A stretch of DNA of 64,000 nucleotides, from NCBI GenBank assembly GCA_002269645.1, contig NIVC01001535.1, positions 92,976 to 156,975 of the forward strand, written 5' to 3'. This document shows, one piece after another, positions 4,384-17,461 of this stretch (position 1 is its first letter; every line of letters begins with the position of its first letter). The notes under the pieces were generated by a model, which saw only the letters and a list, made by a program, of their open reading frames with translations, did not search any database and had not been told where the DNA came from. This DNA comes from Macrostomum lignano. Its lineage: Eukaryota. The position numbers and the translations under genes are program-made.

Positions 4384-7300
4384 GCCATTATGCGACAGCG
4401 GCCTCTTACTACAGATGGAGGAGTCTGAATCAATCAGAAGGACGGAACTGCTCAAGCAGTCTTAATCCTGGCTTAAATGTCCACATCAGCGAGGCTCTGG
4501 TGGATATCATGATGTATCTCTGGATGAATGGTAACATTTTAACAATTATATTTCTTGCATGCAATTCCGACATGAGCCTAGGTCTCATACTGCATGTATG
4601 CTAAACTATAGTGGACCCAGGGTATTCAAAGGTTCACACAAAAAATCAGTCGCCACCATTTACCTGCACAAATGTAAACCGAGGGAAAATCCTGCTTATT
4701 AGACATGACTGTTACAGGCAAAGCTTTAACTGCATAGGTTAGGTATTAAAACGGAAAAATGTCGTACGGGAACGGCGATTCACTGGGTGTGCATAGAGAG
4801 TGGGTGTGTATTGGGAATGGGTCATCCGATAAATCATCGGGGGAGGAACGTAGATATCCAGGGTTAGAATCGTGTAAAATTAAAACTTCAGTGTAAGTCC
4901 CATCAGTGGTCACAGCAAATTTTTGATTTTTAAATCGTAATATACGTCTATTAAAGATCATAGCGCTATCCTTCAGAGACAAACAAAAATGTGCCAGAGA
5001 TCTGTGGAAACGAAGTTCGTTTAACCCATTCGGCATTCCTAGAAAACAATGCGGGCAAAGGTAAGCGATTTTGCTACGCTATTTAAAAAAGCGCAATGTA
5101 GGACTTAGAAATACAACAAATAAATTGTATTTTAGTGTGCCTAAATCCGCACAACAACGGCGAAATACGGCTCATCAAATCCTTCCATGCGTTGATGAAC
5201 GTTGAGGCCAAAGTGACGGCTATCGGCAGTGTGCCAGCGATGTTGGACTACAAAGACTCAGGGTCAGCTACCACATACAGAGGCTACTTTGAAGTTGCCA
5301 ATAAACCAATATTGACTTCAGGACCGTCTGTTACTGAAATTGCTTATGTAAGCGGTTTCTATAAATAGTCAAAGGCAATATATATTTACCAAAAACATTT
5401 GTGCAGATTAAAAAAAGCGCTTATTTTTAGGCAGTCTACAGACTTCTAGTGACCAACGATTGGTCCTACGTCGCCATTGTGATCGAAGCTGAGGACGGAG
5501 CAGTGAGGCTGTCCCAAGCTCTACAGTCGATGTCCAAGGCCGATCAGAAAGTCTGCTTCCCGATCGTCATCCAACTCACGTCCAGTAATGCGACGGCAGC
5601 TGCAAAAGCTCTCAGGAACTTCGTGTATCCCGACATTCCCCGACTCACTGTCGTATATTCCGGATCCGGGAGCACATTTCTGTCGCTCTGGGACCTCGTC
5701 ACGGGCTTGGATGCATTGACAGCCGACTTGGAAAAGAGATATCAGCTTGTGCTGGTTGGAGACGCTCTTGGAAGCTTCTACCGAGCGACCAACTCGACGA
5801 GACGGCGACACTTTGGTCTCGGAACACTTTTTGTGTTTCCAGGAGTTCTTGACCCGAATCCGGCGTCGGACAGTCTAGCGGTGCTTCTGAAAAACATCAG
5901 CAGCACACCGGAATCGATGGGAGAGTTTCACCGACTTACGGACACTTGGTCACGACTGCAGCATTTCAAGAGCACAACAAGTGAGCAGTGCGACTGGACG
6001 AAATTCGGTGACCTGTGCTACACCCAAGCACTGATTTACGACTTCCAGCTGCTGTCATTCTTGCCGCTCATTGGCTCCGCCCTCGACTTTTCGCCAAGCG
6101 GAGTGGCGAGTCTCCGCCGGAAGAGCGTCAGTTTGTCGGACCTCCGATCTTTAGTGCCGTTCGTTGACGCGTTTTTGCGGCAAAACTTCACCGACTACTC
6201 ACTCGCCAGAGGCTTGAGCCACAGAGATCGAGGCTTTTGGCAACCGATCGTAAAAGTGTACCAGAGCCGGTTTGATTCACGATCGGAGGCGATCCTGGAA
6301 AAGCTGGGCGAGTTAAGGATAGTGCAGGCCGGCTCAGCGAACCAGAACTACGAGTGGGACTTGAGCACGATGCCCGAGCTGTACGAGTTCAGGGGCGGAA
6401 ATCCTGACAATCTTCCTGTTAAGGCAGTCAGTGGCAGCTCCGTGTGCCCGCGGAGCTGCCCCGAGTGCTCAAAGTATCGAGGCAAGCAGTCTGTTGAGTA
6501 TCAGTTCGGCGACCTTTACATTGGCGCGTTGATCCCAGTGTTTAATAGGGCAACGGATGTGTACAAATGCAGCGACGGGAACTTTGATGAGCAATCGACT
6601 GAGTGGTCTACAGCTTTTCGATACGTTATTAAACTTGCGGCTTGGGCCAGCGAAGGCGGCGCAACTCCACCCCCTGGCGTTGATGCCTCCCTGGTTGATA
6701 AACAGTTCATGCTCGGACTGAGGGACCTAGTCTCGAAGGTTCAGCGGAGTCGGAGTACTAAGCTAAAATGGGGCTACGTAATTCTTGACAGTTGCTATTC
6801 AGCGCCCCTCCTGACGAACAGGCCAGCTTTGTTGCTAAATGGCAAGCTGGAGCCTTTAACTGGGCTTAACTATACCAAGTTCGTAGGCTTTATTGGAGAA
6901 GCCTCCAGCACTCAAACGATGGCGGCTAGCCAGGTGCTCAAGCAATACAGCCTGCCTATTATTAGCTTTGCGTCAACATCAACAGCTCTGAGCGACGTCT
7001 TTCAATATCCGTTCACAATGAGGACAGTGTCATCAGACAACGAGATTATTGAGGCTATGATGACTATACTAAGGCACTACAATGTCGATTTGATTACAGT
7101 TGCTTATGCACCAAACGCTTACGGCTTATCGCTTCGCGACGCAATGTTGACCAGAGCCAACCGAGATGGAGTCTGCATCGCCAAACTGCTGGTACTGAAT
7201 TGCGCTTACACAGATACGGTCTGCAAAAGAAATCTAGCAAACGATATGCGCAGGCCAGGAACTCGATATGTAGTATTTCTATGCGACTCCGTCGACCTCG

Positions 7301-8922
7301 CCGCATTTCTTAACTACACTGAGGTAAAACGTTTTTAGGTTTCGAATCTCCATATTTTCTTTTGAATTTTTTTAGCACCTAATCTATCCATGGTTTCAAT
7401 TTTTAGGTGGAATCAGACCTCGAATTTATAAATATTTTGGCAACTGAAGACATCGACGAGGTGATGTTTACGGGAAAAAACAATCTCGGTGTGGGAACCA
7501 CCATGGTGCAGCTGGTCTCCGCTCCTGAGCCGGGATTCCTCAACTACCTCAACTACTCGCTGACACGCATGCCCCCGAACTCCAACAACTTGTCCCAGTG
7601 GGACCGACTGTACTTCGAGCTGGTGCACCAGTGCTACCTCACGGACAGCTTTGTGCGCAGTGATAAGTACACCCAGCCGTGCTTGCCCAGCATCGTCGCG
7701 TCGCATCACATTCGCCAGCTCGAGTCCCGATCCGTGTTCGTCATGACGGCGACTCAGACGCTGATCCTCGGTTGCCTGACGGCAATCGACTACTTGTGTC
7801 CGGTGGTGACGCCCGAGCCGGCGTGTCCGAACTTCTTCAAAGGCGACAGCGTCACACAGGAGCAGCGAGCCAACCTCATCATGTACGGCAGCCGGCTGAA
7901 GCCGTCCGGAACCACAGCGCAGCGGTTCTCGGGCAAATACGGAGGCGAGGAGTGGTCCTTCCAGAAGATCTTCGAGAACCGGATGGGTCGGACGCCGATG
8001 CGGCTGATGCAGTACCGGAAGATCGGCTCGGCGGAGTACCGCTTCGTGCAGGTGAGTGTCTCACTATTTTTGAATCGCGTGTGGGAACTTTTTGGGAGAG
8101 TTTAGTCACGACAATATTCGAAATGTGTAATGAAGAAACTACCGTACCAAGAAATATTTATTGACACTGATTCATTTCTTAATGAGGTAGGGAATGAAGA
8201 GCAAAGTTTTTTATTCAGTTTATTTTAGAAAACCATGAGGTGGATTTCTGTATTTAGGTATTTAGACAAATGGATACGTACATGCATTTAGTGGTAAAAT
8301 GAGCATTAACACAGGAATCTACGGAGTATTATTTTCGTTAGACGAGCGTATGATGGGCGCCCAATCCGCTGTCTCCGGAGCTCCTCAATACTGTTCGCAG
8401 GCAGGCACGCCCACACAGACTTTTGACATTTGATTTTTCTTTGCCACCCCAAAATCAACCCAGTTCGGCCTATTCGACGGCGTGAGCAAATCGAATTTCG
8501 CTGAGTCAGCTGAGAAGCTGTTTGCTCAAGAGCGTCAAGTCAACCCGAGTCCAGCCAAAGTCTGTCGTCGGGCGGAAGATTGCGGCCATCCCAAATGCGT
8601 GAACAGCATCAGCCAGTCGGCTGCATCAACCGAATCGGGCGTCATCACTCCCAGACCTGCACCGTCGCCTGCGCTTGGCCTCCTAGGCCTTCTATTCCTT
8701 CCCGGAGTTCTTGTGGGAGTGATCATCTTTTGGTGCCTTCGGCGGCTGATCCCTAATTTTGGGAGCAGCGAGTCGGATTACGCCTACGGTGATAGAGCGA
8801 CCACCGAATTGCCTGAAGTTTCTACGATGGGGCGAGAGAATAGAGATTCAGGTTTGTACGATACCGCCTTTGACACGGGCACAGAATCGGGCCGTGCTCT
8901 GCCAGCGATCAAAGCGTACTAA
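4384..8922 (+). CDS. Single-pass receptor copy 1: degenerate VFT + mGluR/CaSR-like VFT (ANF_receptor-type) + one TM helix + short Tyr-containing tail
   Basis: Exons 4384-4530, 5136-5347, 5431-7323, 7407-8051, 8464-8922 with consistent phases. Class C motifs [50 protein letters not shown]. Upstream VFT-like [17 protein letters not shown]. Single hydrophobic span LGLLGLLFLPGVLVGVIIFW followed by CLRR and a stop. No 7TM. Confidence 0.85.
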
Positions 8923-17000: not shown

Positions 17001-17461
17001 GTCCTTGTAAGACAGACAGACAGACAGACAGACAGAGACAGACAGACAGACAGACAGACAGACAGACAGACAGACAGACAGACAGACAGACAGACAGACA
17101 GACAGACAGACAGACAGACAGACAGACAGACAGACAGACAGACAGACAGACAGACAGACAGACAGACAGACACACAGACAGACACACAGACAGACAGACA
17201 GACAGACAGACAGACAGACAGACAGACAGACAGACAGACAGACAGGTGGCCACCCTTCACCCCGCCAGCCTGCCAGTCCAGTCGGATTCCTATTACTATT
17301 GCGACCCGGATGCGACAGCGGGCGGCAGCTCGGGTGCAGCAGTGTCACGGAAGTTGCCAACGTTGCCACAGGAGGAGCCGCCGACGCCGAAGAGGCGCGT
17401 ATTTCGCGCACTGGACGCGAGCGACCCCACCACGGAGCCCGTCACATCGGCAGAGGATTAA
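11034..17461 (+). CDS. Single-pass double-VFT receptor copy 2 (1-bp frameshift at ~13776)
   Basis: Predicted exons 11034-11091 (signal peptide [19 protein letters not shown], phase-1 donor GTGAG), 12711-12869, 13120-13328, 13426-15314, 15401-16045, 16363-16760, 17269-17461. Same exon pattern as copy 1. TM is [30 protein letters not shown] here vs CTACCGAGC in copy 1 gives the frameshift. First and last exons are less certain. Confidence 0.8.
11124..12422. mobile_element. Degenerate non-autonomous hAT-like element in intron 1 of receptor copy 2
   Basis: Starts CAGTGTTGGG. Clusters of CCGGAAGTTACTT/CCGGCAC subterminal repeats at 11135-11270 and 12318-12415. Right terminus (CCCATATATG) only partly complementary; no clear TSD. 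Confidence 0.4.
17011..17245. repeat. (GACA)n microsatellite
   Basis: Direct observation. Confidence 0.97.

Follow-up and report, generated by a model that had tools for sequence, protein, structure and literature searches.

Venus-flytrap (VFT) domains are the ligand sensors of the glutamate, calcium, GABA-B and sweet/umami receptors and of the fish and vomeronasal amino-acid receptors. In the natriuretic-peptide receptor NPR-C (NPR3), an ectodomain of the ANF_receptor family stands on one transmembrane (TM) helix with a short, non-enzymatic tail. The Venus kinase receptors (VKRs), which respond to amino acids, likewise carry a VFT on a single membrane pass (PMC2680970, PMC4026697), and in BvgS tandem flytraps are mounted on a single-pass sensor, the membrane-distal one being no classical ligand trap (PMC4352136). 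In this work, we have analysed a 64-kb stretch of the genome of the flatworm Macrostomum lignano (contig NIVC01001535.1, positions 92,976 to 156,975; hereafter the window), which carries two homologous genes in tandem, gene 1 (4080-8922) being followed by gene 2 (11034-16764) in the same, + strand orientation. A third copy was not found by tblastn on either strand of the 64 kb. Our results show that these paralogues encode type I membrane receptors belonging to a spiralian family with two flytraps and a single membrane pass.

Each protein opens with a signal peptide and a degenerate flytrap (VFT1); a CPRSCPEC connector leads on to a class-C-type flytrap (VFT2), after which come a stalk, one TM helix and a short tail. 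The preliminary description of this locus had already laid out a degenerate VFT, the CPRSCPEC linker, a canonical VFT, one TM helix and a non-enzymatic tail, and this was confirmed for both loci. It had named G-protein-coupled receptors (GPCRs), ionotropic glutamate receptors (iGluRs) and guanylyl cyclases as the usual hosts of such domains, leaving out the single-pass VKRs and NPR-C. With the ligand-binding domains of class C GPCRs (mGluR1/5, CaSR, T1R), VFT2 shares the bilobed fold, the Pfam family and the backbone-binding residues. The window genes differ from these receptors (about 20% identity) in the extra flytrap in front and in having one TM helix, with neither a nine-cysteine domain nor 7tm_3; three-cysteine connectors stand in for the Cys-rich domain. 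VKRs are likewise invertebrate receptors, flatworms included, with a single pass and a class-C-like extracellular flytrap, but they join one flytrap to an insulin-receptor-like tyrosine kinase, whereas the window genes have two flytraps and no kinase. The likeness to NPR-C lies in the ANF_receptor-family ectodomain, the one TM helix and the non-enzymatic tail; in NPR-C, however, there is only one such domain, of the NPR subtype, which takes its peptide across the dimer, and the top matches of the window proteins are class C, not NPR. BvgS and EvgS are bacterial, belong to another periplasmic-binding fold class and have a histidine-kinase output, and the resemblance is one of analogy, not of homology. 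We set the pair apart from class C GPCRs, VKRs, natriuretic-peptide receptors and iGluRs because each class fails on its defining features.

The identity of VFT2 is well supported. ANF_receptor (PF01094) is the only family passing its Pfam threshold in both proteins, and it does so in their second half, with E-values of 1.3e-29 for gene 1 and 2.2e-25 for gene 2 (threshold 25.4 bits). The best sequence matches in the PDB are the flytrap domains of mGluR5, mGluR1, mGluR3 and T1R, at about 1e-17; all 60 listed PDB sequence matches and the top 50 Foldseek structure matches are class C receptors, mGluRs accounting for 49 of the latter 50. An AlphaFold model built on a family alignment of 46 sequences reached a mean predicted local distance difference test (pLDDT) score of 75 and a predicted TM-score (pTM) of 0.70, with pLDDT of 85-96 in VFT2, and its best Foldseek match is glutamate-bound mGluR1 (1ewk_A; E 2.3e-25, TM-score 0.85 normalised by target length). 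A model made on a 9-sequence alignment (pLDDT 54) was set aside for the 46-sequence run. Pfam did not detect VFT1, and the whole-model Foldseek search gives the best domain per target only. Aligned by hhalign, a profile of the three Macrostomum N-domains matched the VFT1 profile of molluscs and brachiopod with a probability of 93% (E 2.9e-7, 263 columns), and in the predicted model the order of strands and helices agrees with that of a flytrap, lobe 2 having a pLDDT of about 90. On these profile and model comparisons, "degenerate VFT" is a fair description of the N-terminal half. The model then shows a single long helix at residues 1081-1107, the TM segment being followed by RR. The connector cysteines (C505, C509, C512) and those of the stalk (C1046, C1052, C1057) are invariant or at least 90% conserved across the family. 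The stalk holds three cysteines only, spaced C-x5-C-x4-C and not C-x4-C-x4-C as first described, against C-x(3-5)-C-x2-C in other family members.

To rebuild the gene models, we combined open frames and splice signals with an alignment to a full-length M. lignano paralogue, P0002 (PAA84059.1, 1182 aa). Both genes have seven exons, with all introns GT-AG and intron positions and phases identical. In gene 1, exon 1 (4080-4134) provides the start codon and signal peptide (MRPALFSFAIIVAISLLT) and ends in a GTAAGT donor in phase 1; splicing from 4134 to 4384 brings back a frame with homology to the N-terminal end of P0002. Exon 2 (4384-4530; ..HISEALVDIMMYLWMN) starts lobe 1 of VFT1, and the database model P0001 uses the same junction. 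Exons 3 (4977-5060) and 4 (5136-5347) are followed by exon 5 (5431-7323), which holds the remaining VFT1, the CPRSCPEC connector (6445-6468) and the VFT2 ligand-binding core, by exon 6 (7407-8051), with the C-terminal third of VFT2, and by exon 7 (8464-8922), with the end of VFT2, the stalk CRRAEDCGHPKC (8563-8598), the TM helix (8671-8739), the tail (8743-8919) and a TAA stop. The frame is unbroken over the seven exons, 1164 codons in all. In gene 2, exon 1 (11034-11091) encodes the signal peptide, and its splice (..VLLT-ELYCAKS) is also present in the independent model P0155. Exons 2-4 lie at 12711-12869, 12955-13038 and 13120-13328, exon 5 (13426-15314) carries VFT1, the connector (14439-14462) and the VFT2 core, exon 6 (15401-16045) the C-terminal third of VFT2, and exon 7 (16363-16764) the stalk (16462-16497), the TM helix (16552-16617), the tail and the stop. 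The position 4384, taken in the preliminary description as the start of gene 1, is thus the acceptor of exon 2, with signal-peptide exons lying upstream in both genes; the junctions that this description had placed at 8051 and 16045 do have good GT donors. A long open frame at 12651-13343, considered as exon 1 of gene 2, was rejected, the comparison with P0002 leading to another frame with short introns. The 81-nt intron of gene 2 at 13039-13119 is in frame and stop-free, and models P0003 and P0155 retain 26-27 extra residues there; the homologous intron of gene 1 (5061-5135, 75 nt) holds two stops. The near-identical proteins in the databases are all unnamed "ANF_receptor domain-containing" models of M. 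lignano: P0001 (96% identical), P0003 and P0155.

Could these be ordinary class C GPCR genes whose seven-transmembrane (7TM) exons were missed? A 7tm_3 domain is indeed present in the nearest relatives beyond the family, but this explanation is close to refuted. Neither protein gave a Pfam match to NCD3G (PF07562), 7tm_3 (PF00003), guanylate cyclase, kinase or Lig_chan (PF00060 / PF10613). One hydrophobic helix follows the ectodomain, and in both genes the frame stops after this helix and a tail of 49-63 aa. Open reading frames (ORFs) of at least 30 aa on the + strand in 8900-12650 and 17470-21000 had no Pfam match at E <= 1, and when the 7TM regions from six related receptors were used as tblastn queries, none was found in the 64 kb on either strand (best E 0.94). 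At the P0002 locus in the NCBI assembly the downstream genes lie on the opposite strand. The same single-TM ending is found in P0002 and in at least 40 orthologous models; dozens of independent models from other species end alike. The absence of a nine-cysteine domain, a 7TM, a guanylyl cyclase and a channel, as first described, is upheld: splicing from the donors at 8051 or 16045 into 7TM exons would have overturned the layout, and no 7TM-like sequence was found in the window. Since there is no seven-helix domain, these receptors cannot couple to G proteins in the manner of class C GPCRs.

The binding pocket of VFT2 supports a ligand of the amino-acid type. In both copies S, T, D, Y, E and R occupy the positions of mGluR1 S165, T188, D208, Y236, D318 and K409, the numbering being that of the established literature; for the first four this agrees with the preliminary description. 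In gene 1 the corresponding motifs lie in exon 5 (S165 at 6895-6912, T188 at 6967-6984, D208 at 7024-7038, Y236 at 7114-7131) and in exon 6 (the E at the D318 position, 7437-7454; the R at the K409 position, 7719-7736). Among 46 family sequences, S165 is kept in 43, T188 (as T or S) in 43, D208 in 38, Y236 in 45 and D318 (as E) in 40, while the positions that read the side chain (Y74, R78, E292, K409) vary, that of R78 being nearly always hydrophobic. The alignments thus show VFT2 to be a class-C-type flytrap that keeps the residues expected to clamp the alpha-amino and alpha-carboxyl groups of an amino acid. The R78 equivalent had been given as W, in EWS; the family alignment agrees on W (6595-6612 in gene 1, exon 5), although the assignment holds to within one residue (E557 or W558), and a phmmer alignment of the region to solved structures aligned only the GDxYIGAL anchor. 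This W, which aligns with W70 of CaSR, presumably stands at the R78 position, going by the family alignment and the mGluR1 and CaSR sequences. Contacts between CaSR and L-Trp have been described at W70, T145, S147, S170, Y218 and E297 (PMC8115157). As these map to the same VFT2 positions in our alignment, the pocket looks CaSR-like rather than of the glutamate type.

The conservation of the pocket also bears on whether the ligand is an amino acid at all. VFT2 might instead bind an ion, a peptide, a sugar or a protein, or the molecule might be mainly adhesive or structural: flytraps with the same backbone residues also answer Ca2+ and other ligands, as CaSR does, the side-chain-reading positions are unlike those of every characterised receptor, and VFT1 has no pocket signature. 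We consider this improbable, because the five backbone contacts are each retained in 38-45 of 46 sequences, which would be difficult to account for if the ligand had no alpha-amino-acid-like moiety. In VFT1 all five backbone-binding residues are lost in the three Macrostomum proteins, whereas the same signature is kept in VFT1 of 32-39 of 43 molluscan and brachiopod sequences; the degeneracy of VFT1 is therefore a feature of this lineage.

How widespread is this architecture? A word-indexed search for homologues, whether queried with one sequence or with the family alignment, yielded nothing beyond near-identical fragments from M. lignano. The family came to light in an exhaustive HMMER search over 1.84 billion representatives, with 1225 matches, and the same architecture was found in at least 40 clusters at 50% identity, plus M. 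lignano PAA84059.1. The taxa, checked for a sample, comprise ten mollusc genera (Haliotis, Solemya, Saccostrea, Mya, Pinctada, Sinanodonta, Bulinus, Batillaria, Lymnaea and Mercenaria) and the brachiopod Lingula; examples are Lingula XP_013382567.1 and Haliotis XP_048248200.1, besides the Macrostomum paralogue. The gene pair shares with the family the signal peptide, the tandem VFTs, one C-terminal TM helix and a three-cysteine connector after each VFT, and over the full length it is 41-44% identical to PAA84059.1 and 16-20% identical to the mollusc and brachiopod members. The check proposed in the preliminary description, for the same architecture in other lophotrochozoans, was therefore positive. 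All members are annotated "uncharacterized" or "hypothetical", apart from a few labelled "GRM7-like" or "metabotropic glutamate receptor 3-like". The suggestion that the locus represents an undescribed system stands in one respect: we found no description of the two-flytrap family, or of multi-flytrap GPCRs, in the searchable full-text literature, whose coverage is incomplete. In the same literature eukaryotic tandem or multi-flytrap receptors were not found, and only the bacterial BvgS/EvgS and the single-flytrap VKRs surfaced. In another respect it does not, as what is undescribed is a whole family, already present without a name in public databases.

The next-nearest relatives carry several flytraps and a bona fide 7tm_3 without NCD3G, and are likewise unnamed in the databases. 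These relatives, which lie outside the window (P0007, P0009, P0013, P0017, P0081, P0083 and P0104), come from a nemertean, a bivalve, a hemichordate, amphioxus, a sea urchin and an octopus. Two flytraps precede 7tm_3 in Branchiostoma (e.g. XP_035696128.1; 1307 aa in three taxa), three in Branchiostoma, Lytechinus and Octopus, four in Saccoglossus (XP_002735016.2) and five in Tubulanus (XP_074641006.1) and Sinanodonta. A C-x(2-5)-C-x2-C motif follows every flytrap, including the last one before TM1, and the first VFT fits the family VFT1 profile best, the later ones that of VFT2. These GPCRs thus share the VFT-connector module of the window genes but end in 7tm_3 rather than in one TM helix. 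The common module of a VFT and three cysteines therefore argues for one superfamily, built on a 7TM or a single-TM base. The Polypterus models named "CASR protein, partial", which run to 2500-3900 aa with as many as 10 VFTs and with hydrophobic segments scattered along them, look like fused tandem V2R models and were set aside.

The cytoplasmic tails (49-63 aa in Macrostomum) contain no domain; that of gene 1, of 59 aa, is acidic and Tyr-rich. A Y-x-x-P motif lies 9-41 residues past the TM helix (mostly 12-19) in 24 of 41 family tails, a count that is inflated by the relatedness of the sequences, against 5.5 +/- 2.1 (maximum 13 in 2000) within 45 aa of the TM helix in a shuffle control. P0002 has it in EPEYDVPV (YDVP) and gene 2 in YYYYADPE (YADP; 16687-16710). 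Phosphorylated Y-x-x-P is the classical preference of the SH2 domains of Crk, Nck and Abl. The tail also bears on the main alternative explanation, which we regard as unlikely: that these proteins do not signal, and act as decoys, clearance receptors or accessory subunits. They would bind the ligand, or pair by their flytraps with a genuine class C GPCR, and would then do no more than buffer, internalise or modulate, in the way of NPR-C with natriuretic peptides. In favour of this, the tail is short and lacks an enzyme domain, Tyr-based tail motifs can be endocytic signals, class C flytraps are generally known to dimerise through lobe 1, and the nearest relatives, class C GPCRs made of the same VFT and cysteine-connector module, are potential partners. 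However, the conserved Y-x-x-P differs from the classic endocytic Y-x-x-hydrophobic motif, many molluscan tails are 250-750 aa long, which would be unexpected in a pure decoy, and no partner is encoded in the 64-kb window. Of the sensor, co-receptor or decoy role first inferred for the pair, what gained support is the amino-acid type of the VFT2 ligand, from the conservation among 46 members; the roles themselves are inseparable by sequence.

Comparison of the two genes revealed a mosaic of very similar and very different segments. Tract 1 (5429-6470 against 13424-14464, + strand) is 99.0% identical, with a synonymous rate (dS) of 0.029 and a ratio of non-synonymous to synonymous rates (dN/dS) of 0.09, and runs from the exon 5 acceptor to exactly the CPEC codons of the connector. 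Tract 2 (7479-8057 against 15473-16051, + strand) is 97.6% identical (dS 0.085, dN/dS 0.13) and covers the C-terminal third of VFT2. The edges of both are sharp, and outside them, introns included, the copies are too diverged for blastn. From this pattern we take each tract to reflect a recent gene-conversion event of its own. The copies still differ in the N-terminal third of VFT1, in the VFT2 ligand-binding core and in the stalk, the TM helix and the tail. In the diverged coding segments the proportion of synonymous differences (pS, Nei-Gojobori) is 0.78-0.81, which is saturated, and that of non-synonymous differences (pN) is 0.25-0.41; saturated synonymous sites together with low pN indicate old paralogues under purifying selection. 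Synonymous and non-synonymous changes since conversion number 7 and 2 in tract 1, and 11 and 5 in tract 2. The Macrostomum VFT1 is still under purifying selection despite the loss of its pocket residues.

Within tract 1, gene 2 has lost a base. Relative to gene 1, exon 5 carries a 1-bp deletion after 13776 (TTCTAC[C]GAGCG), the missing base being one C of a CC pair, and the frame is broken inside VFT1. The preliminary description had overlooked this frameshift, along with the signal-peptide exons and the gene-conversion mosaic. Model P0003, a gene-2-type copy from the same species, carries the shifted reading, and P0155 reads through intact. The deletion could be a lesion specific to a haplotype or copy, or an indel error of long reads. 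It would also fit a view of one or both genes as pseudogenes or assembly artefacts, and the tracts of 97.6% and 99.0% identity could hint at assembly collapse. This view is very improbable: gene 1 is intact over its seven exons, P0155 reads through the deletion site, the changes since conversion are mostly synonymous, and the segments outside the tracts are saturated in dS, therefore old paralogues and not duplicated haplotypes.

At its 3' end, gene 2 had been given a last exon at 17246-17461. Exon 7 already ends in TGA (16762-16764), a stop that overlaps a GT, and the segment at 17246-17461 (+ strand, ...AED*), a possible alternative last exon with no counterpart in gene 1, is out of frame with the canonical AG and in frame only through an acceptor 4 nt upstream, within an (AGAC)n repeat. 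The proposal thus fails at the canonical junction and after the TGA, and holds in frame through the repeat acceptor. The extra exon may be real, because its predicted product repeats the YYYxDP motif of exon 7. The (AGAC)n microsatellite itself occupies 17010-17245, directly upstream, with about 60 copies that form a ladder of AG acceptors.

What could such a receptor do? Our current hypothesis, to which we give an even chance, is that the paralogues are dimeric sensors of the amino-acid type that signal through the tail or a partner. By analogy with class C flytrap domains, the ectodomain would be dimeric. VFT2 would be closed by an L-amino acid or a close analogue, the pocket presenting, like that of CaSR, a W where mGluR has R78, the basic residue that reads glutamate. 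Closure would re-orient the dimer and bring stalks, TM helices and tails together, as in VKRs and natriuretic-peptide receptors, and the output would go by way of the tail or of a partner protein; together, the juxtamembrane Y-x-x-P and the cluster of acidic and Tyr residues resemble a phosphotyrosine docking site. VFT1 may act in scaffolding, in dimerisation or in regulation. The paralogues differ in the core of VFT2, in the N-terminal portion of VFT1 and in the tail, differences that may tune them to different ligands or outputs on a common scaffold, with gene conversion keeping the remaining segments alike. A wider proposal, which we put forward tentatively and with less confidence, is that of a spiralian-wide class of G-protein-free amino-acid receptors, read out by Y-x-x-P docking and forming one superfamily with the class C GPCRs of two to five flytraps in nemerteans, molluscs, hemichordates, amphioxus and echinoderms.

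Several observations weigh against the reading of the pair as signalling amino-acid receptors. Gene 2 is frameshifted in this window, the family is known from sequence predictions alone, and lobe 1 of VFT1 is modelled at low confidence (pLDDT 45-70). Dimerisation is argued by analogy, and we identified no intersubunit cysteine. The assignment of the W is ambiguous by one residue, and P0002 lacks D208, Y236 and D318, so canonical binding is impossible for some Macrostomum members. The tail of gene 1 has an acidic Tyr cluster (SDYAYGDR) but no exact Y-x-x-P; the tail motif is therefore not universal, and sequence relatedness swells its count in the family.

Other features of the window lie around the pair. 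A 22-bp satellite (GACACACTAAGACAGACACTGT) extends over 570-1561, with about 45 copies at 96% identity. Upstream of gene 1, on the + strand, two similar ORFs of about 95 aa (~1985-2300 and ~2650-2950) follow the pattern VASVTVTGSN..CLDV.WPASNTS..YQL.CGS..VVKxGF, with a sub-threshold Fn3-like Pfam hint only (E 0.003), and may be exons of a neighbouring gene. Downstream of gene 2, ORFs at ~18717-19263 (+ strand) contain a Cys/His knuckle and by eye resemble the C-terminal region of ORF2 from a non-LTR retroelement, with no significant match in Pfam. CT-rich tandem arrays with units of 14, 16 and 20 bp occupy 20623-22236, 22627-23187 and 23659-24000, and account for the GC skew of -0.71 at 20-22 kb.

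What does this family add to the biology of flytrap receptors? With two flytraps in tandem on one helix, a known sensor domain would gain a new chassis, in a family conserved from flatworms to molluscs and brachiopods with its amino-acid pocket preserved, and the same module has also built multi-flytrap GPCRs in several phyla. The labels "GRM7-like" and "metabotropic glutamate receptor 3-like" are misleading and should not be propagated. The architecture raises the questions of how flytrap closure is passed on through a stalk without a Cys-rich domain or a 7TM, and of what the upstream flytrap contributes. Macrostomum lignano is amenable to RNA interference, transgenesis and in situ hybridisation, and a chemosensory or nutrient-sensing role for these receptors would be directly testable in this animal.

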